DNA from: Gekko japonicus
Lineage: Eukaryota
Direction of reading: 5' to 3'
Length of the DNA stretch: 64,000 bases
Assembly: GCF_001447785.1 (NCBI RefSeq)
Contig: NW_015164664.1
Span: forward strand, 588,274-652,273
Below, piece by piece: positions 25,435 through 51,247 of the stretch. Made by a program: the position numbers and the translations under genes. Every line of letters begins with the position of its first letter. Positions within the stretch are counted from its first letter, which is position 1. A model generated the notes under the pieces. That model was not told where the DNA came from and made no database searches. It worked only from the letters and a program-made list of their open reading frames with translations.

Positions 25435-26271
25435 ATGAAGTGGGAAGGCTTCTACTCCCTTGTGATTGGTGTGAACCGTCACTCCACAGCCGTTGGCCGC
25501 ATCTGGCTCTCGGTAGTGTTCATCTTCCGCATCATGGTGTTGGTGGTAGCTGCTGAAAGTGTCTGGGGAGACGAGCAAGCCTCTTTCATCTGCAACACGC
25601 TACAGCCTGGTTGCAAGAACGTCTGCTATGACCACTACTTCCCCATCTCCCACATCCGCCTGTGGGCCCTGCAGCTCATCCTGGTGACCACTCCGGCCTT
25701 GCTCGTGGCCATGCACGTGGCATACCAGCAGCATCAGGAGAAGAAGCTGTTAGTGATGACAGGCCATGGGGATGCCAAGCACTTGGAAGAGGTCAAGAAA
25801 CACAAGATGCGCATTTCAGGGTCCCTATGGTGGACTTATGTTTGCAGCGTGATCTTCCGCATCATCTTTGAAGGAACCTTCATGTACATCTTTTATGTCA
25901 TCTACCCTGGGTATCAGATGGTCCGTCTGGTCAAATGCAATGATTATCCCTGCCCCAACTTTGTTGACTGCTTTGTCTCACGGCCCACAGAGAAGACAAT
26001 TTTCACTGTTTTCATGCTGACCACCTCTGCCATTTGTATTGTCCTCAACGTGATTGAACTGGTGTACTTGCTGGTGCGGGCATGTGCCCGCCGTGGTCAC
26101 CGAAACCCTAACCCATCTTCAGGAAAGGGCTCCTTCCTGGGCCACAAGCTGTCCGAGTACAAGCAGAATGAAATCAACCAACTGCTGACAGAACAGGACA
26201 GCTCCCTCAAGGACATTCTCCGTCGTAATTCAGGGGCACAGGAGAAGACTGACCGCTGTTCAGCCTGCTAA
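25435..26271 (+). CDS. GJB1: Gap junction beta-1 protein (connexin 32), 278 aa, single coding exon
   Basis: [36 protein letters not shown], both triple-Cys loops, Cx32-specific tail [25 protein letters not shown]; adjacent to ZMYM3 as in mammals. Confidence 0.97.
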
Positions 26272-28672: not shown

Positions 28673-29332
28673 AGAGCCCCCATCTGCATCTTGTCTGTAT
28701 CACATGGAGGTATTTATTATTATAGGTAATAAAATGGTATTGCACAACTGCTGTTTTTCGAATTTTGTTAAGTCTTTACTGCTCATACACATGGCACTAT
28801 TTAAGGCTAGCCCACCTGAAGCAAGACTGATGGGAGCTGGTATGCATGCAAGCAGGACAAGCTGCAAATCAGGTTCACACAACAGGTGGATAAGAACCCA
28901 CTGTGGCCACTGTTAAAATATGTTGACTGTGTTTGCTCCAAGCGGTCTCTTAACTTCTGCAGGCTCAGTTGCTATGCAAGGGCACAGGAAATGCCTGACA
29001 GCGGGACAACAGAAGACCAGAGTCCACAGTTCCTACTGCGGCAGCACAAGCCCTCTCACCGACGTCTCCTAGTGGCCCAAGAAAGGGGTCACAGAGGAGA
29101 GTGGCTGGCAACATTGTCATTGAACTGGGAGCAGATGCAAAGTTGTGCTAGAGGAAGTGCTTCGCCACAATGTCATGTTGCTCCAGGTTGGAGGAAGGAG
29201 TCAGCAGTAAAGGGGAGCTGACTGCCATAGCTTCCATGCTGGGTCAGCCAGAGGAAGGAAATGACCCTCCAACAGCACACATGCAGCCAGAGGCGGGTCA
29301 CTCCAAGGTCCTGTGAGCTGGAGAGCACTTAC

Positions 29333-29696
29333 CTAAATATAACCCCTGTACCATGTACACTCACCCTGCAGGAGGGGTTATAATTAGCAAAGTGCCCAGG
29401 CCGAAAATAAAGGCAGAGGAGGTTACCCCCAATCCCCAGTGGCTACTGTACTGGTCAGTCATGGCAAGAGCCAATAAGCAACAAAGCTCTGATGGCAACA
29501 AGGCCCTGCCTTGGACAGAGACTCAAGAGCTCAGTTCTCCGGTGATGGTACCAACGAACGGCAACAGCTGGTCAGGCACTTGTGGGCTCTTGCTTTTAGC
29601 TTCCTTTGAGGGGGGGGCAGTGCTCTTTGGGCAAGAGATGCTCGACAGGACTGCAGCCGATTGATGCTGGTGCTTCTGAAGCTGGAAGTGGTGAGT
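29333..29696 (+). promoter_or_regulatory. Candidate promoter/enhancer and non-coding first exon of the second connexin
   Basis: Two MEF2 consensus sites (29333-29342, 29378-29387), CCAAT at about 29471, CAGCTG E-box at about 29565, donor GTG|GTGAGT at 29690/29691. Confidence 0.5.
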
Positions 29697-30144
29697 TTTG
29701 CTGCAGCTACTGCAGGGATTTTCTTGCCTCTGGTCTTCAGCTGCATACCTGCAGTAATTTCAGTTCTTGAATAGGGCAGTGGCAGTATGTTCCCTGTATG
29801 TTCCCCTTAGGCTAGGGTAGTGCTGCAGAGTAATACCATTTGGTTGTGCTTGCAGGGGCAACAGAGCTAAATACAGGAAAGAGGCAGAGCTGCTACTCCT
29901 GGCCAGTAACTGGTTAACCAGGCCTGGGGCCTCTGTTGCCTTTGGTCAGATTAAACTCAGGCTTTGAGAGGCACAATGGGTACCACCAGAGAACAAAGGC
30001 AGAATGAGCCAGGTCGGCAAACTCAGCACAGGTAGAACCCGCCCCTCCTGGCATCTCACTCCCTTTGTGTTAACAGAAGGTGCTCCAATGCCTCTAATGG
30101 CATCTGCCTGTCCCTCTCTTTCAGGGCAAACAAATGTGGTGCCC

Positions 30145-31080
30145 ATGGGGGACTGGCACCTGCTTGGAAGGCTGCTGGAGAGTGTGCAGGAGCACTCCAC
30201 AGTCGTGGGCAAAGTCTGGCTGACGGTGCTCTTCATCTTCCGCATTCTGGTCCTGGGTGCTGCTGCAGAGAAAGTGTGGGGGGACGAGCAGTCCAACTTC
30301 TCCTGCGACACCAAGCAGCCCGGCTGCCAGAGCGTCTGCTACGACCAGACCTTCCCCATCTCCCACATCCGGTTCTGGGTGCTGCAGATCATCTTTGTCT
30401 CCACACCCAGCCTCATCTACCTGGGCCACATCCTGCACCTGGTGCGCATGGAACAGAAGGAACAAGAAAGCCTGGAAGCTCAGGGTAGCAGCTCCCTTAC
30501 GGGACACCCTAACCCTAACCCCACCAAGGTCTCCATTCGGGATACTCAAGGTAGGATCCGCCTCCAGGGGGCCATTCTGAGGACTTACATTTGCAACATC
30601 ATCTTCAAGACCCTCTTTGAGGTGGGCTTCATCTTGGGGCAGTATGTCCTGTATGGTTTTGAGCTGAAGCCTCTCTACACCTGCAGCCGCTGGCCCTGCC
30701 CCAACACAGTCAATTGCTACATCTCCCGCCCCACTGAGAAAACGATCTTCATCCTCTTCATGCTAGCCGTGGCCTGCCTCTCCCTCCTGCTCAACATAGT
30801 AGAGGTGTACCACGTGGCCTTCACCAAATGCAGGGTGAGACAGTCAGCCAGACACAATCCAGGTGCTGAGGAGGAGGCTAGGAGTCCCGATCCCCAAGGA
30901 CATGGGAGCACTACTCCACCCCGTAGTATCACTTTGCAGTCTAGGGACAAGGTCTCTAAGGGGGAGAGCCCTGGAGCAGGGATGGTGAATGACAGCCCCG
31001 CTTGGGTTGCGAGCCAGAAGCGAGACAGCAAGTGCAGCAAGACTGGCAGCAAATGGAAGCCTGGCGACCTAGCTGTTTAG
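30145..31080 (+). CDS. Alpha-type connexin, GJA3-like (probable gja2/cx39.9 group), 311 aa
   Basis: [50 protein letters not shown], Cys patterns C-x6-C-x3-C and C-x4-C-x5-[11 protein letters not shown]-terminal PDZ-type DLAV; acceptor ctctctttcag at 30124. Confidence 0.93.
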
Positions 31081-31970
31081 CCCAGTGGATGCTGTGCTCG
31101 GAGACAGCGAGACTGTGGAGCTGATGTGGTCAGCCTAGAACCCAAACCCCCAAGCGTCTCCCCATTGCCTGACTAGAAAAGAAGAGATGCAGAAGCCAGG
31201 ACCCTTGAAGGAGTGAAGCGGTGGTGGGGAGAACAACCCTCTCACTGCCTGGGCCTGTCCACACCCCTTTCAAGTTAGGAAGCAGTAGCTGAGCAGAAGG
31301 ACAGGAGCAGAGACTGCGGCGGAGGTCTTCCCAGCTCAGCAGGATATTCTGGGGCTGGTCTCATAGCTAAACAGAGCATCTAAGAACTAACGGTCTGCCT
31401 GGTACACTCCATATCCCCCCCCCCTTTAAAGTATATGGTAAGACCCATCCCTTCTGACCCTTGGTAGGAACAGCAGGAAAGCCAGCAGGAGAGTGTGCTG
31501 GCCGTGTGGCTCATGCTTGGGTCTAGGATGAGGTCTGCAGAGCCTCTTGCCACCTAGTGGTCGGAACAGACAAGGGCACCCAAGCGGCAGGAAGAAGCTC
31601 CTCCATGGGTTCCAAATGCAAATAGGGAAGCAAAGGAAGGGGAGCTTGCCTCTCACCTGCATGAGCCTGTCAGATCACTGTCTATCAAGTGAAACTATCC
31701 TGACAACCGGGGCTCTCAGGTTCACATCTTTCACATTACTGAATCATTTCTCTAACTGGAGGTGCCAAAAACTGAACCCGGGGCCCTCTGAATGCAAAGC
31801 AGATGCTCTAGCACTGAGCCACGGCCCCTCCCCTTGGCCCTGGGTGCTGACTGGTACACAGGCTCCAGTGCTATGGGAAAGGGAGCCAACTGGCACACCC
31901 TCATCGGCAGAAGCCCCAGACTGTCCTCACTGCCGAAAGAGAGGCAAAGACAGCATGCAGGTTTTGTGCC

Positions 31971-31976
31971 TTTATT
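31971..31976 (-). terminator. ZMYM3 polyadenylation signal AATAAA
   Basis: tttatt on +, about 830 nt past the ZMYM3 stop; a Pumilio-type TGTATATA lies upstream at 32096-32103. Confidence 0.65.
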
Positions 31977-32798: not shown

Positions 32799-33000
32799 TC
32801 AGTCCATATCGTCATCCAGACCGCCGCCCCCGCGGCTGTGCTCCTCATAGATCTCGCGCACGGCTAGGATACGGTGCAGCAGCCTCTCAAGCATGCTTTT
32901 GTCCATGGGGATGACCGAGTACCACAGCGGTGACTCGGCGACGCACGATCGCTCCGGCTGCAGGTAGAACACATCGTTGCGGTTTCGAAGGCTCTCGGGG
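32799..33000 (-). CDS. ZMYM3: ZMYM3 coding exon 24 (last), stop TGA at 32799-32801
   Basis: PESLRNRNDVFYLQPERSCVAESPLWYSVIPMDKSML..ILAVREIYEE..DDDMD*. Confidence 0.93.
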
Positions 33001-36000
33001 CTGTGGCCAGAAAAAGAGAAAAGAGAATACTCACCTGGGTGGGAAGCAGAGAGATGGGCACCGGTGGGAGCTTAGCCAGACCCTCCGTTTCTGCAACGCT
33101 TTTCTTTGTGCCTCTGCAGCCTATGTGGGTAACTCCTAGCCAGGGAACGGGATCCACACGGCTGTGCAGAAGCACAGAGAGCCGAACTCCCAACATGATC
33201 TGTCTGCTTAGTGCTGCTCGCGCTAAGCTGGTTTTCAAGCCGGTTGCTTCCACACCCACCGGGCCCCACCAAGCCGCCGCTGCTACTTTTCATGCTCTCC
33301 ACAACCAGTGCCCTTGTGGCCATTTTATTTTTTACTGTTACTGCCCACACCCACTTTGAGGGCGGCCAGCAGTGATGGTCATGACACTGCCTGCAGCCTC
33401 TTGGCTCCACTTCCACTGACAAAAACCTGCCTAAGGCCTCAGCCAACAACGTGGAGTCCCTGCCAGGGCCCCTCACCATTTGGACAGATAAAACTCGTAG
33501 AACTTGACCGGGCAACGCAGCGGGTTCATGCGATTCTCTCGCTGCTCCAAGACCGGTGCTTCTTCCTCCCGCTTCCGCTTGCCGAGGCCGCCATCTGCAA
33601 GGAGAGAGGTAGCTGGGTCAGGGGCTGCCCCCACGGCCGATGGGCAGGAAAAGCACACATGCAGAAAGCGCTCCCTACCTCGCCCCTTCCGGTGCCGTAC
33701 AGGAGCATAGTAGCGGATGCTCACCACCTTGGTGGTGCCCCGTGACGTGGTGCACTTGCGCGACTGTCGAACCACGTTGGTGAAGGAGAGTTGCATGTGC
33801 TCCTCAGCTGTCTGCAGCCCAAAAAACTTGGTGTTGAAGAACATGAGGGTGTTGAGGAGCACAAATGGGGAGTAGACGCCCAGCTGCTTGCACTCCCAGA
33901 GGTGCTCCTCTTCCACGCGAGAGAAGACCGTGTCTGCAAACATACAGGCCAAACGACCTCCGTCAGAGCACAGGTATGGCACAGCTGACCACAAGGCGAG
34001 AGAGAGAGAGAGCTCTGATGAACTGCACTGAATAGCCTGCGGAACTGAACTACATTGGGAGGGGTGGGAGCAGGCTATCCCCTCTGGCAGGTGACCTCTC
34101 CGAGTCCCTGACGCCACTTTGCCAGGCCAAGGCACATGTTCCCTTTTGGATCTGATACAGTGAACCTGCCCCTGCTACCAGCAATTCGCCTGCTTGCTTG
34201 TGGCTGTGTGGGCACATGTGCATGGCCAGAAACAAGTAGGGAGAAGCCAGTCAGTCATTTCTCAACAGTCTGGGGAAAGGGGAGCCCAAACAAAAATTTA
34301 AAAAACCTTGGTTCTATAGCTCGTGTAAAATTTGCATTTCCTACGCTGTACATGAATACGGAAGTTTAACAGCTAGTGCATTGAGCTTGGGCCTAGGTAT
34401 AAAGCACAGCTCATCCTTAGGCCTCAGTGGGTGGTTTATAAAATGCAGATTACAAAGGCCTTCTTCCTGGAGTTACAGTGAAACAGCCTGAGACATTAAC
34501 AGTGCCACTGGCTTCAAGGGGCTTTAGAAGGATGTAAACTCTCCTGAGAGTGGGACTGTAGGATTGCGAAAGGCGCAGCAAGCATACAACACACAGTGAT
34601 TAGTCCTAAACAGGATCAGCTGTTGTTGTTTTTTTTTGGGGGGGGGGAACGAGGACACTCAGAACAAAGGCTGATTTAGAAGCTTCCAGACAAGCTTGGG
34701 GAGGGGGGGACCACAACCTTCTTCCTTGTGGACAGCTGACCGCCTGTTAACCCTTTCCCAGCATCAGGCCCGCTCTCTTCCCAAAGGCCCTCTGAGAATC
34801 CCAGAGTGCCAGAAGAGGAGAACAGGCTTCTGCCCCGCCAAACGACGTACTGTTGGGCAGGATCGTGGTGGGCTGCCAGCCGCTGAGTGTCTTGTTGAGC
34901 TCCTGCACGAAGGTCAGGTAGTAGAGGTCTGTGAAGATGTTCACCATGCGATTGTTCTCTAGCAGATACTGGTGGGCAAGAGTGGGGGAGAAGTACAGAA
35001 TCACGCAGGGAATGCAAACTTAGCCTCACACACACACAACTGTAGCAAAAGGAATTGCAAACTGAGTAACTGCCAAACTCCTGGTATGCACTATTCCCAG
35101 TTGCAGAAGAGCTTTTTTGCCCTGGGAAGAGCCACAAAGAAATGCCTTGCTTACTTGATGCTGACATGCAGGACAAGGCCCTGTTGTTCCCTGGCAAGTG
35201 GGGAGATGATGGGTGAGGCCAGGGCCTTCCTACCTGCTGTATGCCAAGGCAGAGGTAATAGATGCTGTCGGGCTCATAGCGCTCGCCATTGGGCCGGGTG
35301 ACTTCCTTGACGAACTGAGCTAAGCCGTAATTAAGCTCTGCGGCCGTGCAGGCCAGGATGTCCTCTTTGATCCGCATAGGCTTGGCTGTGGAAACAGCAA
35401 CAGGCAGCCTCAGGCTGGGAGGGAGAGACATCAGTTTCCCAGCATCCACCCACCCACCTCTGACATTCCCTTCTTATGCAACCATGGTCACCTTCGACCC
35501 ATACTTACGGCCAAAGCGCAGCTCATCACCTTTGCTCGTTTCGCCACCGGCATACTTGGCTTGCACCCAGCTCTTCCAGGCATTCACGCCATAGGAATAG
35601 TTGAGTGCCGTACAGCTGGGCTGGCTGCTCATGGAGTCCCGTGAACAGCTCTCAGAGAGCACCAGGCGCTTCTGGCCCTACAGTGGGGACAGAAGGCGGT
35701 CTCAGGCAGGCCACTGGTCTATCAAAGTCACTATCAGCTATTCCAGCAGTGGCTCTCCAGGATCTCAAGTCAAGGTGTTTCACATCACCTACTGCCTGAT
35801 CCTTTGAGCTGACGTTCCTGGGGACTGAACCTGGGACCTTCCTGCATGCAAAGCTGGTGCTCTACCATTGAGCCATGACCCCTTCACATGCCCTCTGCAT
35901 GCATTTTTTATCAAGGCTGCAGCCAGAATCATCATCACTGAATAGTGGTTCCTGCGCACCCTGTCATCACAGGCACTTAGATAGTATCTCCAGATCATTC

Positions 36001-39000
36001 CCTTTTAGATTTACCATCTGCTGGCTGCTTCATGATTCTAGATTCAGTGGGTGGTCTCACAGTGCCACCTTGAACTCTCCTGGCCTTTACTACCAAACTG
36101 CCCCATAGTATAATGTTAACACACTCCATGGGGGATGGCTGTATTTGGAGGCAGCAGTTTGTCCCAAATGCTAAACTCCCATTTTGTTCAACCTAAACTG
36201 GTCATTTATTTTGTGTAGCAGAAACCAAGGGGGGAAAAACACCGAACCTAACAATGAACTCCAAAACCAAGCAAAGGTTAGTGAAAAGGAGGGCCAATAT
36301 TAAAACCTTTCCATAAAAGATAAAAAGAGGTACATGTATTTATTAATAATAATAACAAATTTTAAAACATATATAGAGGCCCATTTACAACCAATGTATA
36401 TAAAATATAACAATATCAAGGGCTTACAAAGTTGACCTTACGCGTTTCGGCCAAATACGCCTTCCTCAGAGGTCATACATATGTGGCAAGATGGTTAATA
36501 ATTATTTTCACATTTTTACTTATGAATGCTGTGGCAACACAATCAAAGAAGGAAATTTTTGGACCACAAGTTTATAATCACTGGGCTAGTGATTGCACTT
36601 TAAAGGTCTTATGTGCATATTTACCTTATGCCTGGTGGTTTTACTTTTGAACAATTTACTTTATGGTCCTCATTGAATCTATACTTTGTATATATTTCTG
36701 ATTGTGTTTATGTGAAAATAATTATTAACCATCTTGCCACATATGTATGACCTCTGAGGAAGGCCTATTTGGCCGAAACGCGTAAGGTCAACTTTGTAAG
36801 CCCTTGATATTGTTATATTTTATATACATTGGTTGTAAATGGGCCTCTATATATGTTTTAAAATTTGCTATTATTATTAATAAATACATGTACCTCTTTT
36901 TATCTTTTATGGAAAGGTTTTAATATTGGCCCTCCTTTTCACTAACCTTTGCTTGGTTTTGGCATTTATTTTGTGTTCCACTGCAAATGGCTGGTCGTAG
37001 CCTTTGAAGCTGTTAATGTTGGGAGGAGCTGTAGGGCTGCCCCCTTTCCCAGAGGCTTGCCCAGGCACCAAGGTAATCAATAGAGGTCCTTGTCTGCACC
37101 CCCAGTTCAAAGTACAGTCAACAGCTACAAGAGAGAAGGGAAAATTCTCTAGACTGGTGCTACAGCTGCAGAATTCCCCAACCTCAATTCTCTTTCTACT
37201 ATGCACTCAAGGAGAGCCTTTACCGGCTACCAAAGAGTATTTATGGACTGTTTTTAGGGGTATGCTTTGGGCTTTCATGCAAGTTTTAAACTGTAAATGA
37301 ATTTTATTAACTGTGAATTTTGTAAATGGTTCTCTTTGATGTACACCACCCTGAGCCCGATTTCATAGGGGAGAGCGGTTTAAAAATCTAAGTAAATAAA
37401 CAAACTAGCGGTTTTAAATAAGGCTGGAAAAGAACAGATTGATGATTTTTCTTGCATCTTCTTTGCATTGTTTTATTCTAATGTGGTGCCACTTTAAACC
37501 AACCTAGAGGGTCCTTTCTGAATGGAAAGGTGGGATATTAAATGCCATCGTCCACTTTAAAGTCACAGCAAACAATGCTGTTTCCTCAGCAGCTGGCCCA
37601 CCAGGCTGGGGTGGGGGCAGAACTCACCTTGCGGATGGCACGAGGCAAATCTTGGTCAGTGGATACATCCTCTGGGCCCACCAGGCCACAGTCAAAGAGG
37701 AAATCCACGCTGGGATTAATGTCCAAGGGGTCTGGTGGGGGGAACAAAGAAAGAGGGTCAGCAATATAACAGGTTTCCCAGCTGCATGTGGCCCTCAAGG
37801 CCTTGGCTTACAAGCTCCACTGTACATGCAGAGTGAAGCACTGCCCATCACACACACATCCACCGTTCCTTCTTTCCCTGGTGGGCACTGACCCAGACCA
37901 CACCAATCCTAAAGACCGGGAAAGAGAGCAACTAGCCAGTCATTGGCCTCTCTCCCTTCTTCTTGTGGGCTCTGCAGGTCACAGCTACATGCCCATCTTC
38001 TGCAGGAGGCTTTAGAGGCAATGCCAGTTACTCTTTCTGGGGTGAGGGGCTGTTAGCCAGGGTCCATGAATTTCCCTCCCTGTACCTCCTCCTCCTTCAG
38101 GAGAGGCTGGTGCTCCACGCCCTCAAGCCCAGTGGCCCCAGGCCACTGTTACCCTTACTTTTGGGGAAGTCAGCTTCCAAATCCTGACCCGGCTCATCTA
38201 GCACATTTGCCATCTTGACCGCCATGGCCAACACATCGTCTCTTGCTGGCCCAAACAGGTCACAGTCCTCCAAAAGGCCCTCGGCACTCTGGTTGCTCAC
38301 CAGGTCTGTGAACACATAAATAGGTCAGGCAGCTGCCCCTTAGTAGTGTCTCTGGAAGAGTCCTCACAGACAAGATGATAGTCAGAGACACTCCAGATGA
38401 ATGGTTTCTGCCTACCAGACCACAGAGCTAGAAATGAGTGAAAAGTTTACCCTGCAAGCACGGAAAAGACTATTTCTAATTCCTAAGGACCAGCATGAAT
38501 GTATTAGGAGCAAGGGAGGAACATCCTTTACTGGGGTGCTTGCTGCTCTTGACAACCATCTAATCCCTGTCTTCAGCACCTTTATTCCTTTTTCTCCTTA
38601 TGCTTCAAGCAAAATTATTTGAACACAGGAGTCTTGAAAGCAGGTGAACAGACAGTAAATGGTTAATGCTGTAACCCGGTCTAAGAACCTTGAGTAACAG
38701 AGGATTCAAATGGAATTCTGCAGTTGAGAGTGGCAGTTAGGAGTGGCAGTGGACAGTTGACAGTGAACAGTGAGAGCAAAGCAGACTGTGAAAGGATCAA
38801 GAAGGATTCTGAGTTAGGGAAGTGGGACACATAACCCATCCCTATCAAGACTGAGGGAAATAGCTCCTAGAAGAGGGGGATGATCCCTAGTCTGTGGATA
38901 AGAAAGAAAACTGGAACTTGTGTGAATGTTCCTGACTGCACCAACTTTAGTGTCTGTGAGACCAAGAAGCTTATATTGGTTTCTATAAGCAGAGACTGCC

Positions 39001-42000
39001 AAGAAATCTCTCTCCTCAAGTTTTAAAGACTGTCTAAAAAAAGAAACAGCTACTTGTTTGCGACAAATTATTTTGTGTTTATTTGTATATAAAGTTACCT
39101 CATTCCTGTTGCCTGTACACCTCATAAATCCTAAACCTGATTCCTACCTGACCATTTCCCATCAAAGTGAAATAAAACAGTTTGTTAGTTTTGACTGACC
39201 ATCAGCCTTTCATGTGCCATTATCAAACAAGGATAAAAAAAGGATTTTAGTCTCTACCCTCAGTTCCCAAGGCTGGGTCAGCATTTAACAATATACGTTC
39301 AAATGACTGTGTGAGACAGCCAGAGAAAAATAAAGAAGAAAAAGGGAATGCTCAGCTAAGAACAAGATAAAGGGAACTCCTGTGAGGGAGGGTGAACTCA
39401 TCATAGCAGAGTTCTCCAACAACATCGTAATCAAAGGGACATACATAGAACAAACATATACAAAGCACAAAGGCTCTGTTTTTAACACGTAGGTTGAACA
39501 GAGGCAGCACTGCGCAGAACTATTGCTCATTTTCTCCCTTTTGACTTGAGGGGGTGACAAAAGTTCAGGCAGCTGTGGCTATGAGCAAGACTGTCCCAGG
39601 ACTTACCACAAAGGTCTGATGAGGCCTTGTCCAGCTCCTCTGCTTCTGCTATCATCTCAGCCATAGCCAGGATGTCAGCTTCCAGGGGGTTGGATGGGAT
39701 TTTCACCTTCAGTTCCTCTATAGTCTCTACAATCTTCTCCGTGCTCTCCAGTGTGGTGGGCAGGAACATTGGCACAGGCACCTACAAATGACGGATAACA
39801 CATCAAAGGGTCAGTGGACCAGGAATGTATAGTCTGTACAGAACAGGAGAAGGACAGGTTCACGCTTACCGGGACAGGCATGGAGAAAGGCACAGGTATT
39901 TTCTGGCAGTACATGTTCATAGGCACAGGCACAAAGATCGGCACAGGGATGGGTAGCACAACCACCTGGGGCTTCCAGTCAGCCTCTGTCAGGATCAAAT
40001 AGCAAGCCATTAGCCTTCCCTGCACCTGAGGGAGGACTCTTTTCCCCCGCAAAGAATCTGGAGGGGCCTTACAGCCATTTAGTCTCTGGTCAATGTAGAG
40101 AATCCACAGCTAGGACAGTGCATTCTCCTCTTCTACAGACTAAAAGGATACCCCTTCAGTCTTTTCTCACAGGACATGTCTTCCAAATCCCTGACCAGCT
40201 TTGTTGCCCTCTTCCAGTTTGTCTACATCCTTCTTAAAATGCATTGCCCAGAGCTTAACATGGTACTCCAGGTGAGGCTTGACTGTATTGCATTCATGGC
40301 TTTCCCGAGCAGAATGAGTCCTTGCTCTTGAGAGTTTGTGGGAGTGTGGGTCAGGCTGGATGTCCTCCCACCCACCCCAACCTCTGAACCACCCTATGTC
40401 ACTCCAATTAACTCTACTGCAAACAGAGAGCAGAAGCAAAGAAGGGGAGCCCAGGGTGCTCAAGAAAGCCAGCCTCTGCTGAAGACTCGTCTGCATGGCC
40501 ACAGCTCCCTACAGAGCAGAAGTCAAAGCCCTTGGGAAGCCCAGCTGACCTCCCCTTGCCCTGTCTCACCTGTCTGACAGCCCTTGGACTTCGTTTCTAT
40601 CTTGCAGGACACCCCCCGGTTCTGCATGAGAGGCTTGCACATGGCAGCTTTGTTCTTCCGTGGTGTGACCGGCTGAGACGGCGGAGGGGCAGCCGGTGTG
40701 GCTGGGGCAGAAGTGTTCTTTGCAGGCACCTGCGAAGGCATGGATCCAGACAGAACAAGCATCAGCAGTTGGTGCAGAGAGAGATCCTAGCATCTTCTTC
40801 GGCAAACCATGCTTCCATATGGCCGGAATCAGACTGCAAATAAAGCAGGGCTCTTTCCACCCTCCTCCCACCAAGCCTCTGAGCCTGGATCAAACTGACA
40901 GCCGCCTCCCACCATGAAGCAGGCCAGCAGGCAGCTGCACTCTCTAAACCACTGACTCACCGTGTTGGTCTCTGCTTTGGGGGTAGTGGAAGAGGGCTGT
41001 TTTGGCTCAGGGGTCTGACCTGAAAGGAAACATTTCAGAGATAAGGTCCTTTTTCACTGGTCGTGACCTGCCCAAGTCTGGAAGGCAGGAAATCCTACAG
41101 AATAGCTTACACTTGCTAACAGGACAATGGAGCTGTGGCCATGTCCCTGACTTCTGAATTGGGGGGGGGGGAAGAGCTGTGCTTGTGCCAGCCCATCCCC
41201 AGAGTTAATGCCTGACCTGTGTGTGGAGAAACCTAGGCAAGGCGTTTAGCAGGGCTCAGGAGCAGATTCACAATCCTGATTTTGCAGTGTGGGGAAAACA
41301 GGCAAAAGGAGCCCTCCCTGTCTAGTGAACCTCTTCTCATCCATCCTCAACATTTCAAGTGGAGAAGCCCATAGCTGCTGCTCACCTGATCCTGGTTGGA
41401 AGTGGGGGCCAGAGAGAAAGAGAAGAAAACAAAAAAAGATAACAGGGTGGTCTAAGTCAAGACAGATGTAAGGGCTGGAGGCATCGGTGCCTTACCCAGC
41501 CACTGCCTTGGGCTTTCTCAGGATGACCCACTGTACACATGTGAAAACTCATCAGTCCGGATTGTGTCTACCCCTGCTGTTTTGCACAAGCTCAAAAAAA
41601 AAAAGAGTATAAATTGTGAATCGAGTACTCTAAGAACAAAAATGTCCTTAAAAAAAGAAAAAAAGAGTTCCCAGACTTATGCCTAACAAACATTGCACAA
41701 TTTATACTGCAGTCACAGAATTCAGCCTTTTCACTACGGCAAAGGTCTTCATTTCTAAGCACAGCCAGTCCTGACTAGCTGAGAAGGTCTGAGGGTGCCA
41801 CACACGGACTGCCGACTGGTGCACAGAAGTTCCGCTCGGGGCAGGGTGGGGAGGAATGGCGCAGACCAGATCCCGACACAGCAAACAAGGCTTCTTCTGA
41901 ACGTGATACACCCAAGTGATCCTGGTGCGTTGCTTCCTTGCCCATTTCCCAGCATGGGACACTGGTACCCACCAGGTCCTCTGGCAACACCTGGGCCGGC

Positions 42001-45000
42001 TGCACCTGACGCAGGCACGAGAGGCCATCTCCAGCACGACAGGCCATGTCTACTGCAGGGGCACCATCCCTCTGCTAGGAGCCCCTGGGTCTCCCGTCCC
42101 AGAACTGACCTGGCCCAATACTGCTTAGCTTTTGATTCTGGGGAGAGGAACAGGAGGGTGAGAGCTGGCCCTGGCACTCCAGGCCAAGCCTGGCCCTCCA
42201 CACAGAACTCTCCGCTGGAGAACGGAGCCACCCATAGCAGCCATATCGGAGCCTCCCTGTTAAGAACGGGAGTTACAGGCAGCGCTGGTACCGGCTCCTC
42301 CCGGCTGGCTGGCCCTGTGTGTCATAGAACCAGAGAGGTTAGCAATGGAGGGAGGGAGGGAGGGAGGCGGGGGCAATCCTGCGCGGTCCCATCCAACCCA
42401 CCCACAGGGGCCAGTGCAGAATCAGTCCCTAGCAGCTCTAGCAGTCCCCCCTTGCAGTCAAGCTCCCTGCCGCTTTGGGCTAGCCAAAGCACTGGGCTAC
42501 TCACTGTTCAGCAAAAACAGGCCCTTTCTGTTTGTCTAAGTTAGGCTGATTCTGTTGGTTGTAAAAGCGCAGCAGACACTGCTGGTTGCAGAAGTGTTTG
42601 ATTTGCCCTCGCCAGTGGATGGTTTCCAACAGCTTCCCTTGGCGTTTGCAAGCGTGGCACCGAGCTGCCTAAAACCCGCAACAAGAGGGACAAAGAGACA
42701 GTCAGCCACAAAGTCCTCTGCAGAGCACAGGGCATGGCTGGCAGTCAGCGTAGCATGGGATCTCCTGGACCACGGGGATTCTGTCTTTCTTGGTACATAA
42801 AGAGAAAAAATTCTAGGTCTCCGGGAATGAGGAATTATAAAAGGTCATGCAGTTGCTGTTACAGCCCACCCCCCAAGAGGGGATTTGAGAGGCTAACTCC
42901 CAGCCTTCTCCTTTTCTCCCTTCTCCACGGCCCTCACCCTATGGCATTATTCACCCCACCTGGTCAGACCGAGCGCCACCCTCAAGCAAACCACTACCGC
43001 TTCTGAGCAAGGTGGAAAGCAAGTTTGACTGTTTCGTGTGCCTGACTTGCCGAAGTTAATCCAACTTCCCACAACGCAGGGTTCTAATTGCCAGCAAACT
43101 AAGGTCCCGATAAAGGAGACTGGAGCCCCTGCCAGAGAGCCGCGATAGAGACCCAGCAAGACGGCAAACCCAGAGATCACCCCCTACCCACCTCACCCAG
43201 GCTCTGGGACAGAGCTGCCCATCGACTGACCTTGAAGTACCACAGCAGGTATTTGCTTTTGCAGTCTTCGCTGCAAAAGTCCCAGGTGCTGCCCTCAAGC
43301 TGCTCGGTGACAGCCCGCTGGCACGTCTGGGAGCAGTAGGTGCAGGTGATGCAGCAGAGGCCCAGGTTCTTGGTGAAATCCTGTTTATAAAGAAGCACAC
43401 ACCCTGCGGAGAAACAACATGGGTGAAACCTTCCCGGGGGGGCACGGCGGGCCCCCTCACCGCAGCAGGGAACCCAGAGGCGAGCACAGCTTGGAGGAAC
43501 AGCAGAGCACAGCGGACGCAGAGGCAGCCTGAAAGCAACAATCCTGCACTGGCCCCCAAGGTGGGACTGAAACCGGGAGGGACTCGCCATCGCTCACCTC
43601 TCTGGTTCTAAGCAGAGTTTACTCCGAATGACCTTCGGCCCAAGCCCACCACATGCAAGGACCTGCAAGGCACAGCAAGGCCAGCTGGTGCTGGGGGCAG
43701 GCTGCAGCCGTGCAAGGCGGCCTCCTCCGGCACTCTCTGGGCAGCCAGGCCCCAGCGGGACCGCCCTCCACCCTCCTCTCAACCCCAACTTCCCTCTGCT
43801 ACTGGGCCCCTTTCCTCCTCTCCGCCAAAGGACTGTGTTTAGCCCAGGTCCGGCTCGTGCTCTCCCCAGGTACCTTCGCTGCAAAAGTTCTTCTCCACCC
43901 CCGAGAAGCGGATCTTTTCGTGCAGAAGCTTCTCCTGCTTGCAGTATTCGCACTGGGACACCACCCCATGCAGCCGCTTGAAGTCCTCACAGCAGTCTCT
44001 GCAGCAGAACTGGTAGACCTTAACTGACCACACCAGGACGGGACTCCAGCAGCAGAGAAGTGGGGCCAACTGGATTCTTACTGTCTTTCTGAGGACCAGT
44101 GGCAGACCTGGGCACCCCCGTTTCCCAGAACAAAATCTGCCCACCCCTTCTCTGCGCAGAGAGAGCAGATCTGAGGGGAAGCTATCTCCTGGACTGTCCA
44201 AACAGCTGCACAGTCCAGGAATTGTTCCCTTCCTTCCTCCCCTCCCGGGCAATTTCTTTGCCTCCTGACTGCAACCCCCTCACCTGCCAGTCCAGGATCT
44301 CGGGCTTCCCAGTGAAGAGGTTGTGGCAGGAATGGCAGGTCAAGTGGATCCCACCTTCTGGACTGGTGCGCTGCATTTTGAGGGAAGGGGAAGGGGAGAA
44401 AGATTCAGAAGGGGGCACAGGATCACCTATGCCCACTGTGCCCAGCTTGGAGTTGCCTACCCAGCCTCCTGTTTGCTCTCAGAGTGCCCAAGTTTCCAGA
44501 CTCACATCCACCAAGTGTTGTTGCCCTCCCTCCATAGTATACACCATATTTGTTCCCACCTACCAGGCCTAGATCCACCCTGACCCCCCCCTCCCGCACA
44601 CTCCTCCTATGCCCACAACCTACTGGCTGTAGACACAAGCCCTCCCACCTCCCCTTTCCCCACCACTGAGGGTTGACTGAACCCTATTCCCTAAGGAGGG
44701 GGACAGTAATCGGCAGGCACCCCACACAGGTTCTTCCCAGGGGACGTCCAGCTGCTGCAGCTGCTCCTGGGAGGGAACAGGGTTTGGCCATGGACAATGG
44801 AAGTAAAAGACCAACAGTCTGCGAGTAGAATAAATTATGCAAATCACACAAATGTTATTTGACTGATTTATTGGACAGCAGACACAAACTCTCTTCAGCA
44901 TCAGCAGAAGTAGAAACAGTTTATTTGAGACAATTACCCTCACGATAGATCAGACATTATATATAAATATATAATAAGCTAAGAATTAGCTAAGCGAGCC

Positions 45001-48000
45001 TCACCCTCACCCTCCCCAACCCATCTCTGGCTATTGGCTGAACTGCTGTGATATCAGAGTGTTCACAAACATTGCAAAAGATATGATCATAGAATGCTGC
45101 TTGGGGCAGGATAAAGGTAGGGAACTTAACTCTGGGACAGGAGAGGGTGAGTAAAACAGGGAGGTGTGATGACTGGAAGAAAGGGCAGCAAAGGGCTAGA
45201 AAAATGGGAAAACCTGACACTGAGGAGTTAAGGGGTATGTGCTTTTAGTAACAAATGGTGCCAACAGACAGGCAAGAAGAGCTAAATTTTATACACAGGG
45301 CATGGAGCTCTGTCTTAAGTGCAAGAATGCAGATCAAGGCGAGATAGGACTCATATGACTTTGGGAGAGCACGGGCAACTTCAAAGAGTGATACAGCCCT
45401 TCCCCTTCTCCATCTTCTTTAGCCTTAGAGTTATTAGCAGACACAACCTTCACCTTCCAAAGCTTTTAACAGCAAACAATAACAGCTAGAAGCCTTTTTT
45501 TTTTTAAAGATTATGAAAGCAGAGACTTTCAGGAGTCTGATGGATGCACCAGATCGCAGCCATGCAGAAAACCCACGTTCCTGGGTTTGGTCCCATCACT
45601 GTGACGGTGGCAGAGCCTCCGTATGTACCTGGAATTTGGTCCAGCAGCTGGGGCTGCAGAACTGGTACACCACCTGCTCATTCTTGTTGTAGTAGCAGGG
45701 CTCAGACAGACTCTTCCGGCAGAAGCTGCAAGGCCGAGGGGGTCCTGAGGAAAGGAAAGGCAGGAAAAGGGGCCAGGCTGGTGAGGGAGGACGTGTAGGA
45801 CTCCACCCCACCCCACACCCAGCTCAACATAAGGCCCACTGCCTGAAACTCAGCTTGGAATTTGTCCCCACCCAAGTCAGGATTCCTTCCAGAGCAAACT
45901 GTGGCCAACACCCAGACAGCAGCTCCTAACAACTCAGTTCTCCAGATCTAGGCCCCCTCCTGAGCAACCCTGGTAAGCCAGATTCACACCTCCAGAAGCC
46001 TGGCCCAGCTGCCAACAAATGGAGCAAGACGCCCCAGCAGAAGAGCTCCCAGCCTGACCCACGTGTTGCAGAGTGGCCCTTCTAGCACAGGTGGTGGTCC
46101 ATCTGCCTCCTGCTCTCCTTCCTCATGTGCAGGACACTCTTCCCCCACCACACAAATCCGCCGCAGGCAGCAGAACTGTAAGGGGAGTCCACGACCTCTT
46201 ACCTGTCAGGCCCGCTTGCTTGACTTTGTAGGATGTGGTGCAACAGATGGAACAGAAGAGGCCCATCTTGCCATTCCGGTCCTTGTGGGACAGCATGTCG
46301 AAGTTCTTGCAGAGCGTCTTGCACCACATGCATGGATATACCCGGGTGTTCTTCTGCAAAGAGAAAAGAGCAGAGTGGCTGCCAGGCGGTCCTAATCACA
46401 TCCCTGAGCCCTCTTTCCATCCTTTATTTTGCTCTGAACCTGCAACATCTTCAACTCTCACATAGGGCCAAACTGTCAGCCAAGCCAAGACATTCCTACA
46501 ACAGTTCCCAGGAGGACACTTGTGCACTGTTAAAGAAGGAAATGTGCAGCCCTCCAAGTGTCACAAGGGGTGTGTACGGATCCTTTCCGAGCCTTTTCTT
46601 CTGGATTACAAATGGAAGGCAGCCTCTCTGGTTTTGCAGGTCCCGAGAACTCCTCGCAGCAGACGACCTGAGAAGGGGATGGACTGGGGCTTGTGGCTCA
46701 CCGCAGTTCATCTGGGGCCTGACTCAGAGAGAGCCCTCTGCTTTCACCTTGGCTCAGAGGCCAGAGCTGTGTGGAGGTGCATCCCTGCCTCTGCCCAGCC
46801 TCACCTTCTTGTAGCTGTTGAGGCAGGTGGTGTTACAGAAGCGCTTCTGCTGACCCTCATGGAAGAGGTACTCCAATGGCATCCCCTTGTTGTAAAGGTA
46901 GGTACCGCAGTTGTCGCAGCAGTTAGTTTTCAGGCCCTTGGTGGCACGGAACTTGGTGAAGCAAGCGTCGCTGCAGATGCGGTGCACCACATTCCCATTG
47001 CTGACCTCGTGCTGAATCTGCAAACAAGACACAGTCATTCACAAGCAGAGGGGGCATCAGCAATGGTCTTCATCACCCAAAGGGTAACAGGTACTAGGCA
47101 TGATAGCTGGTAGGCCAGGAGGGATGGCAAGCTTTAGCCCCAGTGGGAGGGCAGGGTAGGAGAAGGCCAAGTAAGGGCTGAAGCCCAGCAAAGAAACTTT
47201 TGATAACCAGCATTAAAATCATATCCCACATTTGGAACCTAGCAGCTATGGCAGCTAGTCATTTGAGCCTACTGCATTTCACATCTCCATTGTCAGTAAA
47301 GCCCAGACAGCATTATTTTATTTATTAAATTTCTATTCCGCCCTTTCCCAAAGGCACAGAGTAGATCACAACTGTATATAAATGCATAACATATAATAAA
47401 AGATAATAAAATCAGATACTGGCCATTCATAAATGATCAATGAAATACACAAAAGCTAATGGGTGGGTGAGTTCCAGGAGGGCCGACAGACCAAGATCAG
47501 GAGAAGGCCACCCTGAACAAGACTGACTCGCAAGCCCTACGGAAGCTTGAAAGGTCCTGCAGACCTAATGTACACAATCAGGTGTTTCTTAAACTATAAC
47601 CAATTTAAAATTAAACTTAATCCAATTCTTAGCAAGCCTACTTCCTTCTCACATGGTACGTAGAACTCCTTTATAACCAACTCTTCTCTCCATTCCTTAG
47701 ATGCTCCTTTCTTCCTACTTGCTTGGAGGGCCTTGACAAAGTGGGATCTGCTCATGCAATCCACTCGCCAACACAGTTCCCCAAGTGTCACAGGGCATGT
47801 TACTCCATGGCTATCATTCTGGAATCTGCCTGACCAGAGTGTCCTTTTAACTCCAGCTGGCAGCAGCTCCCCAAGACCTCAGGCAGAAAGAAGTCTCTCC
47901 CCAGTCCTCTTAACCTGAGAACCTTTAACTGGAAATGCCAAGATTAAACCTGCAGTCTTCTGCCTGTAAAGCATGGACTCTGCCACTGAGCAATGCTACA

Positions 48001-51000
48001 GCACGGTGGTCTCGAACTACAGGCAGCACCAGACTCATGCAGATTCCAGTTTCCCTACCGGCCAAGCCCTCCATTCCTTAACAATGCCCCAGAAACTAGC
48101 CGTGCTCACCTCTCCTGCTTTGTAGCACACACTGCAGCGGACGGTGTCTGAGGCTTCTGCTGTCTGTGGTGCTGGTCTCTGCTGTTGCGCTTCATACAGT
48201 GAGAGGCATACAGAAGTGCAGAACTCATGAAAAGAGCTGCCCGAGCCAACCTGGGCCACGACGGACTCCTTGGTGTTCCAAATCTCCCTGCAGACAGAAG
48301 GGCATCAATCAGACAGAGGGTTAGCCACACCTTGGACCATCCCAGCAAACCAAAGGCAACGCGGAAGCCAAAGACACCAAGAAAAATAGCAAGCAGGGGA
48401 GGGAGGGTATTTGCGAGGCTAGGGCCTGCTGCATCAAAAGCAGCAGATAAGAAACAGGGAGCCCATGTGCAGCAAATGGCAGCAGGGGGCGGGGAAGACA
48501 GCAGCGGCACCCACTTTTTGCAGAAGGTGCAGTTCTTCTTGCTGAGTGGTCTCTTAGAAAAGGTGGTGAGGCAGGTGCTGGAGCAGAAAAGCTGAGGGAG
48601 CCCCTTGCGCTGATAGGCTGTCTGGCCCTTCTGCAGTGGCGTCCGGCAGTTGGCACAAGTCATCTTGGTCACTGTGGAGCGGGCAGCCCGCTGGGCCATC
48701 TGGTTGCGCAGAGACAGGCGAGTGGTGCGCCGAGTGCGACAGGGAACAAAGTCCTCATCGTTGGGGTCATCTACCATGGCATCTGAATCCTCATCAGAGA
48801 CTGGGACTGCAGGAAGCAGGAGAGATGGGGATCAGAATGGTCCTGGGGCATGGACAGAAGGCACAGGATGCAGCCCCTGGCTGAAGCTAAGCAGGGCTGG
48901 GTCACAAATCTCCAGGGAGGGTCCCCCTATGGTAACTTGCCTGGAGTTCCATGATAGAGGGGACATTGGATATCCATGAAATAAACAAACAAGAATCCAA
49001 TGAAAACAAAACAGCAGGAAAGAGACTTTAGAGGAGGTCAGAACATATTTACAAAATTGTCATCCTTCAGCATCCTGAAAAAGACTTCAAGAATCACCAA
49101 TACCAACTCCCACATAAAGGCAGGCTTTACTTTACCTGTCTTGGATAGATGCTTTAAAAAAAATCCTCCATCCAGTGAGGAAGACTCCACCTTTCCCTTG
49201 GATATCAATATAACCACATTGTGCTTTTGTTCCACTTAACTTTAGGAGTTTGGAACCACATAGTTCTTTCCCCATAACTGACCCTAGTGACTGGACCAAG
49301 ATCATCTGAGGGGACTGGGAATTGAACCCATAGCTCTGCAGTCCAACTCTCTGTCCCTTACACCATACTAGCTTTAGGCAACTGCTCTTTTGGTAAACCA
49401 GTCTCCAGACTCTGTGAGCTGTCTGTACCTCTTCAACATAAGACTGCTGGCTGAAGGGCAACTTACTGCTCTCAGAGGAGTTTACTGTTTCAGGTCGGGA
49501 TGCCTCTGACCTCCTGGCTCGCTCACTCCTCTTCCGCTCCTGGAAAACACCAATGAATCTTCAGTCGAGCCAAAGGCACCTGGCCTAGAGAAACCTTCAA
49601 ACTGCAATTATTTACTGAGCACTTAGGAATACTAAGCACTGTACAAAAAAAGGTAGGTAAATCCAGCCCACAAGTTCATGATCTACCATGGGGAGGAAAG
49701 GAAAAGGAAGAGGAGAAGCAGCGCAGATGGCTTGTGACATAGAACTACAGCAGATGGGAGGCCTGCTTTTTCTAAAAGAGCAGCATATGGGCAAGGAGTT
49801 GAGGGAAGAGTTAAGAGCCTTAGAAGAGAGACTACCAATCACCTGTGCCACCTCCTTCCTTACCTTTTCAACTGGCTGCTCACTTCCCTTTGCACCAGCA
49901 CCTTCCCCTGCAAGAGAAGGACAAAAAAAACCCAAAAGCTGTCTGTGAGGCTCCAAAAGAACTAAGTGGCCCAGACTGTGGCTTGCAACAATCATGACAT
50001 GAAAGCATAAACAAAGACTGGGGGAAACTGCTGCAGTGCTGAAGTGCACGGCACAGAAATACTTGGAGGAAGTGGGAACTCCTTTACAATTGGCACTCAA
50101 GAAAGCCAGGTGGACTCTCCAGCTGTGGCCGGAGAAGCAGCAGTGGAAGAAAATAGCTTGTGAGGGAGGGGAGAGCAGCTGGATACGTAACACATTGCTT
50201 GGCAGGCAAAGGCAGGTTAGGACTGTGGACGAGGGAGCTGCAAAGAGTCTTTTTCGAAACAAAAGCAAGTGGGACAGCCACTGGCATCCTCCACCCTCAT
50301 CTTCCTCCAGTTTGCCACCAGAGGAGAAACGAGAAAGGAGAAGAGGGCCCATGCCCTACAGATAGCCTCTGTTGTTCATACCCACCTGGAAGGGATGGTG
50401 ACTGTGCTGCCTCTTCTGCTTTGGGCTTGGCAGGGTCTTTCTGGGAAGTGCTGCTTTCCATCTCTGCTTCAGCTGGGCTCTCTCCCACCAGCTCAGGAGC
50501 CGGATCAGACGTACTGTTGAGGACTGACTCCTTCTCCTCCTCTGTAGATGCCTCCTCTTTCCACAATGGGGAGCTTTTCCTTGGGGCTTTTAACCGGGCT
50601 TTCTTAGCCAGCCGCTGGCTTCCTGGTGAGCCGACGGGCGAGGCTGTTAGGTCTCGTGAAGGTGGGGTGTTGCTCACCTCCACGACGTCAGGGGACTCCA
50701 TGGCATGGTTCTCGGGAAGGGAAGCTGCACTCTCCAGACCCTCATCTTTTGGGTCTTCAGGCTCAGTTTTGCACACTCCTTCCTCTTTCCAAGCTTCTGG
50801 CACCAGGGCTTCCATCCCTGGTGCAGAAGGGTCCCTAGTCCCATCTTCTGGATCTTCAGTACCACCTGCCTTGTACAGGCTGTCCAGGTCCTCTGACTTA
50901 GTGGGAACCACCAGCTCATCCTCTTTGCTCAAGCTATCTAGGATACCAGGCTTCTCCAAGATAGCCAAAGGATCAGATTTATCCAATCCCAGGCTATTGG

Positions 51001-51247
51001 GTTTACTTAGGTCTGACAAGCCATCTGCTTTCACTAAGTCCAGGCCCAAGTCACTGTCTGAGGTTGCTTGCTTGGGCGCTTCCCACTCCATCTCTTGGGG
51101 CTGGAGAGCTGAGGCTTGTGGGACCGAGGCTGTCTGGGAAGCCAGCAGATCCTCTCCAAACTCCATGTCTGCAGGGAGGTCGCCTATTAGTGGCTTATCA
51201 GGCAGAGAAAGTGGCCCCAAGGAGCCAGGAAATTCATTGGGATCCAT
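32799..51247 (-). CDS. ZMYM3: Zinc finger MYM-type protein 3; 24 coding exons, about 1424 aa once the exon-12 frameshift is corrected
   Basis: N-terminus MDPNEFP..LPDKPLIGDLPADMEFGEDLL, multiple FCS/MYM zinc fingers, Pro/Val-rich PxP region, C-terminal DUF3504-type domain; all introns GT-AG with consistent phases except one. Confidence 0.97.
33477..33594 (-). CDS. ZMYM3: ZMYM3 coding exon 23
   Basis: GKRKREEEAPVLEQRENRMNPLRCPVKFYEFYLSK. Confidence 0.93.
33679..33933 (-). CDS. ZMYM3: ZMYM3 coding exon 22
   Basis: [38 protein letters not shown]. Confidence 0.93.
34851..34968 (-). CDS. ZMYM3: ZMYM3 coding exon 21
   Basis: YLLENNRMVNIFTDLYYLTFVQELNK. Confidence 0.93.
35234..35385 (-). CDS. ZMYM3: ZMYM3 coding exon 20
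   Basis: KPMRIKEDILACTAAELNYGLAQFVKEVTRPNGERYEPDSIYYLCLGIQQ. Confidence 0.93.
35509..35677 (-). CDS. ZMYM3: ZMYM3 coding exon 19
   Basis: GQKRLVLSESCSRDSMSSQPSCTALNYSYGVNAWKSWV. Confidence 0.93.
36433..36475 (-). ncRNA. Minimal type I hammerhead ribozyme (sense to ZMYM3 pre-mRNA)
   Basis: Minus strand UGACCU-CUGAGGA-aGGCguauuugGCC-GAAA-CGCGUA-AGGUCA. Confidence 0.8.
36748..36790 (+). ncRNA. Minimal type I hammerhead ribozyme
   Basis: Stem I UGACCU/AGGUCA, core CUGAGGA (36754-36760), stem II GGCC-uauuu-GGCC, GAAA (36775-36778), palindromic ACGCGU stem III, GUA cleavage triplet (36782-36784). Confidence 0.85.
37628..37731 (-). CDS. ZMYM3: ZMYM3 coding exon 18
   Basis: PLDINPSVDFLFDCGLVGPEDVSTDQDLPRAIRK. 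Confidence 0.93.
38159..38305 (-). CDS. ZMYM3: ZMYM3 coding exon 17
   Basis: LVSNQSAEGLLEDCDLFGPARDDVLAMAVKMANVLDEPGQDLEADFPK. Confidence 0.93.
39607..39781 (-). CDS. ZMYM3: ZMYM3 coding exon 16
   Basis: VPVPMFLPTTLESTEKIVETIEELKVKIPSNPLEADILAMAEMIAEAEELDKASSDLC. Confidence 0.93.
39870..39985 (-). CDS. ZMYM3: ZMYM3 coding exon 15
   Basis: WKPQVVVLPIPVPIFVPVPMNMYCQKIPVPFSMPVP. Confidence 0.93.
40140..40290 (-). mobile_element. CR1 LINE RT fragment
   Basis: VKPHLEYHVKLWAMHFKKDVDKLE resembles CR1 RPHLEYCVQFW.P..KKD.DKLE. Confidence 0.7.
40570..40729 (-). CDS. ZMYM3: ZMYM3 coding exon 14
   Basis: TPRKNKAAMCKPLMQNRGVSCK. Confidence 0.9.
40961..41019 (-). CDS. ZMYM3: ZMYM3 coding exon 13
   Basis: QTPEPKQPSSTTPKAETNT; tttcag| and |GTGAGT. 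Confidence 0.75.
42505..42668 (-). CDS. ZMYM3: ZMYM3 coding exon 12 (apparent 2-nt deletion near its 3' end)
   Basis: AARCHACKRQGKLLETIHWRGQIKHFCNQQCLLRFYNQQNQPNLD; |GTGAGT. Confidence 0.88.
43231..43403 (-). CDS. ZMYM3: ZMYM3 coding exon 11
   Basis: CVLLYKQDFTKNLGLCCITCTYCSQ..FCSEDCKSKYLLWYFK. Confidence 0.93.
43874..44018 (-). CDS. ZMYM3: ZMYM3 coding exon 10 (acceptor position uncertain)
   Basis: VYQFCCRDCCEDFKRL..CEYCKQEKLL..FCSE. Confidence 0.85.
44284..44370 (-). CDS. ZMYM3: ZMYM3 coding exon 9
   Basis: RTSPEGGIHLTCHSCHNLFTGKPEILDWQ. Confidence 0.93.
44853..45471 (-). mobile_element. Putative solo LTR
   Basis: TGTTA...TAACA termini, flanks acaaa/gcaaa, minus-strand order CCAAT, TATA-rich tract, AATAAA. 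Confidence 0.4.
45629..45744 (-). CDS. ZMYM3: ZMYM3 coding exon 8
   Basis: PPRPCSFCRKSLSEPCYYNK..YQFCSPSCWTKFQ. Confidence 0.93.
46203..46353 (-). CDS. ZMYM3: ZMYM3 coding exon 7
   Basis: KNTRVYPCMWCKTLCKNF..LFCSICC. Confidence 0.93.
46805..47017 (-). CDS. ZMYM3: ZMYM3 coding exon 6
   Basis: IQHEVSNGNVVHRICSDACF..RFCNTTCLNSYKK. Confidence 0.93.
48110..48287 (-). CDS. ZMYM3: ZMYM3 coding exon 5
   Basis: EIWNTKESVVAQVGSGSSFHEFCTSVCL..CSVCYKAGE. Confidence 0.93.
48515..48806 (-). CDS. ZMYM3: ZMYM3 coding exon 4
   Basis: PVSDEDSDAMVDDPNDEDFVP..CANCRTPLQKGQTAYQRKGLPQLFCS. Confidence 0.93.
49467..49539 (-). CDS. ZMYM3: ZMYM3 coding exon 3
   Basis: ERKRSERARRSEASRPETVNSSES; |GTAAGT. Confidence 0.88.
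49864..49907 (-). CDS. ZMYM3: ZMYM3 coding exon 2
   Basis: EGAGAKGSEQPVEK; cag| and |GTAAGG; 44 nt fits the phase. Confidence 0.75.
50386..51247 (-). CDS. ZMYM3: ZMYM3 coding exon 1 (exon begins 51264)
   Basis: ATG at 51247; donor G|GTGGGT, phase 1. Confidence 0.9.

Follow-up and report, generated by a model that had tools for sequence, protein, structure and literature searches.

A second connexin gene lies beside GJB1 in the genome of Gekko japonicus, and the locus raises the question of which connexin it is, whether it is a new one, and whether and in which tissue it works. The analysis covered the whole stretch of 64,000 nucleotides around the gene, referred to here as the window. With a probability of about 0.9, the gene is the orthologue of GJA2 (zebrafish cx39.9) and encodes an intact, working connexin that would most likely act in developing skeletal muscle.

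The lineage has been described before. The name gja2 was proposed for "cx39.9/gja3like" in view of its close relationship to gja3 (Mikalsen et al. 2020, PMC7066803), and the synteny table of the same study shows that cx39.9 shares its chromosomes with gjb1 in teleosts. A later survey reports gja2 in all groups of jawed vertebrates save mammals and crocodiles (Mikalsen et al. 2021, PMC7914757). Its Supplementary Table S1 gives gja2 as present in birds, turtles, lizards, amphibians, lobe-finned fish, all ray-finned groups, and cartilaginous fish, and does not list it for placentals, marsupials, monotremes, and crocodiles. The survey also describes gjb1-gja2 and gjb8-gja3 as tightly linked pairs of related genes, with the gja2-gjb1 linkage found from sharks onward, and its GJA2 orthogroup was united in 14/14 analyses and sister to GJA3 in 14/14 (PMC7914757). 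Supplementary Figure S22 of the survey prints a Gekko japonicus sequence under the label "Gj-gja2-XM_015409011-gja3like". Comparison by eye, line by line over 16 lines, found positions 30145-31080 of the window identical to this sequence at 936/936 bases; no mention of XM_015409011 was found in the main text of the literature. Since the identical sequence is already printed as Gekko japonicus gja2 (PMC7914757), the gecko gene is a catalogued member of a named orthogroup and is not new.

An earlier, sequence-only reading of the window had called this gene its strongest candidate for new biology, a claim that falls because the gene, its linkage, and its distribution were in print in 2020-2021. 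The same reading had the gene retained in a squamate and apparently lost in placental mammals. The loss stands, but retention is far wider than supposed, and marsupials, monotremes, and crocodiles share the loss. As the sequence, name, distribution, losses, and GJB1 linkage of gja2 were published in those years, the value of the locus as a discovery is small. Part of the recent zebrafish literature still calls gja2 teleost-specific, and database names such as "Cx32.2-like" and "GJA3-like" mask its identity.

The gja2 coding sequence occupies one exon on the forward strand (30145..31080) and is complete with 311 amino acids and a stop codon, as supported by the open reading frame and its translation, Pfam, the identity with XM_015409011, and the tree described below. 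In the open reading frame listing and translation, the frame opens with the ATG at 30145 and is uninterrupted up to its stop codon at 31078-31080. The Pfam Connexin domain (PF00029) covers residues 3-225 with an E value of 1e-98, and together with three cysteines in each extracellular loop it identifies the protein as a member of the connexin family. These cysteines, C54/C61/C65 and C180/C185/C191, are 100% conserved among 34 orthologues. Among solved structures, the top match is Cx46/GJA3 (2.5e-118), which spans residues 1-261, followed by Cx50 and Cx43. The C-terminus reads KWKPGDLAV. In the alignment of the 34 orthologues, the core P-x-D-L-A-V/I is found at the C-terminus of most gja2 orthologues and of GJA3, as part of the fuller pattern K/R-x-R/K-P-x-D-L-A-V/I; variants within gja2 are V/A-L-A-V in frogs and D-D-L-K-I/V in ray-finned fish. 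The reading frame, Pfam match, and alignment thus bear out the earlier description of an intact 311-aa alpha connexin with six extracellular cysteines and the end KWKPGDLAV, and its tail is indeed much shorter than that of GJA3, as had been noted (311 aa versus 438-465 aa in total).

The N-terminal MGDW of the gecko protein is common to all relatives. The connexin frame is also open upstream (30004-30144), where an in-frame ATG at 30004 on the forward strand gives an open reading frame of 358 aa, with an extension that occurs in no relative. The start is placed at 30145 because all relatives begin with MGDW and a likely splice acceptor, consisting of a pyrimidine tract and CAG, was recognised on the forward strand at 30111..30124 by reading of the sequence and motif scan. 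The ATG at 30004 lies upstream of this tract and CAG, and the extension is therefore taken as intronic. The 358-aa frame is a trap for annotation that relies on open reading frames.

Connexin genes usually have a layout of two exons, and the coding exon would for this reason begin at 30125, which leaves 20 nt ahead of the ATG. A candidate splice donor on the forward strand (29690..29696, GGTGAGT cut after its first G), found by sequence reading and motif scan, would end a non-coding exon 1 at 29690. Further upstream, the motif scan located two strict MEF2-consensus sites, at 29333-29342 (+) and at 29378-29387 on the other strand, which are suggestive as possible promoter elements. They are 45 bp apart and 767-812 bp upstream of the ATG, and they represent two of the three strict CTAWWWWTAR sites within the 64-kb window. 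An E-box, CAGCTG, is located at 29565..29570 in the candidate first exon or promoter region and, as a six-base motif, is weak by itself; the scan found a second CAGCTG E-box at 29738. The resulting gene model would have a promoter near 29330-29400, a non-coding exon 1 up to 29690, an intron of 434 nt (29691-30124), and exon 2 from 30125. This two-exon arrangement with a promoter carrying MEF2 sites is a reasonable model that the motifs suggest. The sequence occurs in 19 sequencing runs from one organism, of which 0/19 are recorded as RNA; three raw RNA runs of the species are also on record.

Downstream of the gene (31081-33400), the motif scan found neither AATAAA nor ATTAAA on the forward strand before the last ZMYM exon is reached. 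For its 3' end, the gja2 transcript may rely on a variant signal, or this end may overlap that of the convergent ZMYM gene. The same stretch is GC-rich (0.56-0.61) and contains a 293-aa open reading frame (31792-32673) that carries no family hint.

The neighbours place the gene in the setting described for its orthogroup. The GJB1 (Cx32) coding sequence of 278 aa lies upstream on the forward strand (25435..26271), with a Pfam Connexin E value of 1.3e-88; its score is 495 bits for human GJB1 structures and 358 for those of GJB2. GJB1 and gja2 are separated by 3.9 kb and both are on the forward strand, so the tight linkage to GJB1 that characterises the orthogroup is also seen in the window. On the other side, the exons of a ZMYM-type gene (33473..51247) are located on the reverse strand, convergent with gja2, and end 2.4 kb beyond it. 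They encode a DUF3504 domain (33473-34135), a QRICH1 domain (34676-35449), and MYM-type zinc fingers (48106-48777 and several open reading frames between 43 and 47 kb), all on the reverse strand. A search of the ESM Atlas with the N-terminal exon of this gene gave no usable match, and the only match in a search of solved structures was a zinc finger of ZMYM5. The gene is accepted as ZMYM3 by its position, because it adjoins GJB1. The previously proposed placement of the connexin between GJB1 and ZMYM3 consequently holds for GJB1 and for a ZMYM-type flank, with the name ZMYM3 given by position only. An assembly gap, seen as a run of N, is present at 16723-16880 of the window. Positions 54000-56000, where the ZMYM-type gene has its far end, are GC-rich (0.61) with a strong negative GC skew and are probably the CpG-island promoter of that gene.

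As a member of the connexin family, gja2 would assemble as six subunits into a hemichannel, and two hemichannels would dock through their cysteine-stabilised extracellular loops to form a gap-junction channel. The C-terminal ends of alpha connexins of the Cx43/Cx46 type are PDZ (ZO-1) ligands, and by analogy the P-x-D-L-A-V end of gja2 would most likely bind a PDZ scaffold such as ZO-1. To our knowledge, the expression and function of gja2 have been described for zebrafish only, and we know of no study in an amniote. All skeletal-muscle clusters of zebrafish express gja2/Cx39.9, and its expression in this species is muscle-specific. In zebrafish gja2/Cx39.9 mutants, coupling of muscle cells is reported to be lost and slow-muscle contraction to be weaker (Hirata et al. 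2012, as cited in later work). By analogy with zebrafish, and with the two MEF2 sites and the E-box in mind, the tissue of gecko gja2 would most likely be developing skeletal muscle. The broader proposal is that GJA2 is a muscle connexin of non-mammalian vertebrates, and that the short-tailed, MEF2/E-box-driven gja2 of reptiles and birds couples developing or adult skeletal-muscle fibres. This generalisation is tentative, as is the electrical-coupling system in reptile skeletal muscle that the sequence-only reading proposed; if it is true, reptiles and birds have a muscle-coupling pathway that is absent from mammals.

It is possible, though doubtful, that gja2 is a functional orthologue acting outside skeletal muscle in amniotes, for example together with GJB1 in the epithelium of gut or liver, and that the muscle role is a feature of fish or of anamniotes. 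The close spacing and same orientation of gja2 and GJB1 mean that shared control is possible, and the faster evolution of sauropsid gja2 and the loss of a tail motif, detailed below, would fit a changed role. In a turkey transcriptome study, a "GJA3-like" locus is reported to fall together with GJB1 in cecal tonsil; if this locus is gja2, expression in amniotes may extend beyond muscle. However, samples of cecal tonsil include muscle layers, and the turkey locus is only putatively gja2. The two strict MEF2 sites and the E-box upstream of the gecko gene, as well as the muscle-specific expression in zebrafish, also speak against a role elsewhere. Muscle expression of gja2 in gecko or chicken bears on two points: whether the muscle-coupling role known from zebrafish is ancestral, and what mammals gave up when gja2 was lost.

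That gja2 is a working connexin is supported by the conservation of the gecko residues, which was scored per segment over the 34 orthologues. Conservation is 0.93 in the N-terminus and first membrane segment, 0.91 in the first extracellular loop, 0.96 in the second membrane segment, 0.95 in the second extracellular loop, and 0.78-0.80 in the third and fourth membrane segments; it is 0.43 in the cytoplasmic loop and 0.30 in the tail. On the sequences compared, this is the pattern of a working connexin under purifying selection, a reading based on the segment-wise conservation, the invariant cysteines, and the retained C-terminal motif. In a neutral simulation on the gja2 reading frame, stop-free copies amounted to 5% at 0.1 substitutions per site and to 0.4% at 0.2. 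Among the best 120 of 3987 protein matches, at least 20 squamate entries, and those from turtles and birds, are connexin sequences without breaks; the query is spanned in full by most of the squamate entries, and a few represent shortened or extended models. The GC content at third codon positions is 0.74 in gja2 versus 0.49 in the upstream flank.

The rate of evolution differs among the groups. Root-to-tip distances in the gja2 clade are 0.32 in fishes, 0.38 in frogs, 0.58 in turtles, 0.96 in squamates, and 1.09 in birds, so sauropsid gja2 (squamates and birds) evolves roughly three times as fast as fish gja2, with birds the fastest. The tail motif PYNSKAAYKQNRDNLAVERN is conserved from teleosts to frogs and is lost in sauropsid gja2, and the sauropsid proteins are 40-80 aa shorter than those of fish and frogs. 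The constraint on amniote gja2 may have been relaxed or shifted, as suggested by the roughly threefold rate, the loss of PYNSKAAYKQNRDNLAVERN, and the outright loss of the gene in mammals and crocodiles. The same rate, together with the shortened tail and the missing motif, could also be taken as signs of a decaying relic that is open by chance or newly freed from selection and is heading for a loss like that in mammals and crocodiles. Such decay is very improbable, given the unbroken entries from squamates, turtles, and birds, the strongly conserved membrane and loop segments, the invariant cysteines, and the kept last residues; under the neutral simulation, a preserved frame is unlikely even in a single lineage.

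The identity of this working connexin as GJA2 was examined by protein search and phylogeny. The word-indexed search returned 3987 connexins at E <= 1e-20, of which the best 120, down to 413 bits, were examined. In this set, proteins of geckos, lizards, turtles, and birds under the name "GJA3-like" rank as the closest, with 61-90% identity. The nearest among the matches listed are Heteronotia (90%) and Paroedura, Euleptes, Sphaerodactylus, and Eublepharis (83-86%), and the next matches are the "gap junction protein, alpha 2" of ray-finned fishes, coelacanth, gar, and bichir, and an eel "connexin 39.9". The family was sampled further by an exhaustive search of representatives, and the key ones were named by cluster look-up: GJA3 of the squirrel family, pipefish, sole, and lamprey, GJA8 of frog and bat, gja5a of a teleost, and GJA10 of ostrich. 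The tree was computed with IQ-TREE under LG+C20 PMSF from 64 rows and 302 columns and was rooted on GJB1.

In this tree, the gecko protein lies inside a gja2 clade of 34 rows with support of 100/99, where the bootstrap was not fully settled (correlation 0.938). The clade includes fish "gja2", eel "connexin 39.9", and sequences from coelacanth, lungfish, frogs, turtles, birds, and lizards. Within it, sauropsids (100/99), squamates (99/91), and geckos (100/100) are supported. The branching of tetrapod gja2 follows the species tree: frogs diverge first, turtles next, and birds and squamates last; among the fish groups, the order was not resolved. GJA3 of mammals and teleosts branches outside the clade, so the gecko protein is placed in the GJA2 orthogroup and not in the GJA3 clade. 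No mammalian representative is found inside it (0), and the best 120 of the 3987 matches contain a single mammalian entry, a whale gene model in which a beta connexin and GJA3 are fused. The sole bird sequence outside the clade, a Melospiza model (P0220), joined no supported clade. GJA2 is an ancient alpha connexin and the sister of GJA3/Cx46.

When the 18 sauropsid sequences were constrained to join mammalian GJA3, the log-likelihood changed by -83.7 (AU test, p-AU 0.0002), with a GJA3 sample in the tree that includes no verified sauropsid GJA3. On this sample, the union with mammalian GJA3 is rejected. A phylogeny had been proposed in the sequence-only reading as a check on its assignment, and the gecko protein did not appear in it as a recent copy within GJA3. 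The assignment itself, to the gja2/cx39.9 lineage as the GJA3-related paralogon partner beside GJB1, agrees with the tree, the AU test, and the literature. Even though Cx46/GJA3 is the best solved structure and the C-terminal motif is common to gja2 and GJA3, the idea that a recent squamate or sauropsid duplicate of GJA3 landed beside GJB1, in place of an ancient paralogue, is rejected by the grouping with fish, coelacanth, lungfish, and frog gja2 (100/99), the tetrapod order, and the AU test, and the gja2-gjb1 linkage reported from sharks onward (PMC7914757) leaves it with next to no probability.

Several further observations were made in the search and the tree. A "GJA3-like" protein of the lamprey Lethenteron reissneri (P0127) joins the base of the gja2 clade (99/91), and the sea-lamprey GJA3 (P0130) does not. 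The branch of P0127 is long (1.0), and its position may be an artefact or a hint of a cyclostome counterpart of gja2. In the skink Tiliqua scincoides, a 242-Mb contig carries two extra, very divergent alpha connexins (P0184 and P0301) with lengths of 291 and 292 aa. Both are most similar to GJA3 (57% identity), sit on a very long branch (1.9), and may represent a lineage-specific duplication. Snake proteins are missing from the best 120 of the 3987 matches, in which more than 15 species of lizards and geckos are present, and many snake genomes are annotated. The gene may have been lost or may have strongly diverged in snakes, which is only a lead with a match list that ends at 413 bits. Artefact gene models occur among P0006, P0009, P0010, P0012, P0023, and P0084. 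They include fish models of about 540 aa in which the connexin domain occurs twice, the whale fusion of a beta connexin and GJA3, a swift model that is duplicated internally, and a swan model whose N-terminus carries a false extension of 143 aa.

Compared with known systems, the gecko gene is most similar to the GJA2 orthogroup of zebrafish cx39.9/gja2. The gecko protein belongs to the clade with 100/99 support, the gene has the same position beside GJB1, and the connexin domain, the six cysteines, and the D-L-A/K-V/I end are common to both. In contrast to fish and frog members, the gecko protein is 40-50 aa shorter and, like other sauropsid proteins, lacks PYNSKAAYKQNRDNLAVERN and has a branch about three times longer. 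GJA3/Cx46, known from lens and heart, represents the sister family, with a domain that is about 70% identical and an R/K-P-x-D-L-A-I/V end. It differs in forming a separate clade, in its longer tail (438-465 aa in total), and in its presence in mammals. GJA3 shares a different chromosome block with GJB2/GJB6 and ZMYM2, whereas gecko gja2 adjoins GJB1 and not GJB2. The layout of the two loci is nevertheless parallel, with an alpha gene beside a beta gene, which for GJA3 is GJB2/GJB6, or gjb8 in fish (PMC7914757). If the proposed muscle role of gecko gja2 holds, it would resemble GJD4 (mouse Cx39, zebrafish Cx46.8) in that both would couple developing skeletal-muscle cells. However, GJD4 belongs to a distant subfamily, with delta-4 structures matching gecko gja2 only at 2.7e-39, and, unlike gja2, it is conserved in mammals.
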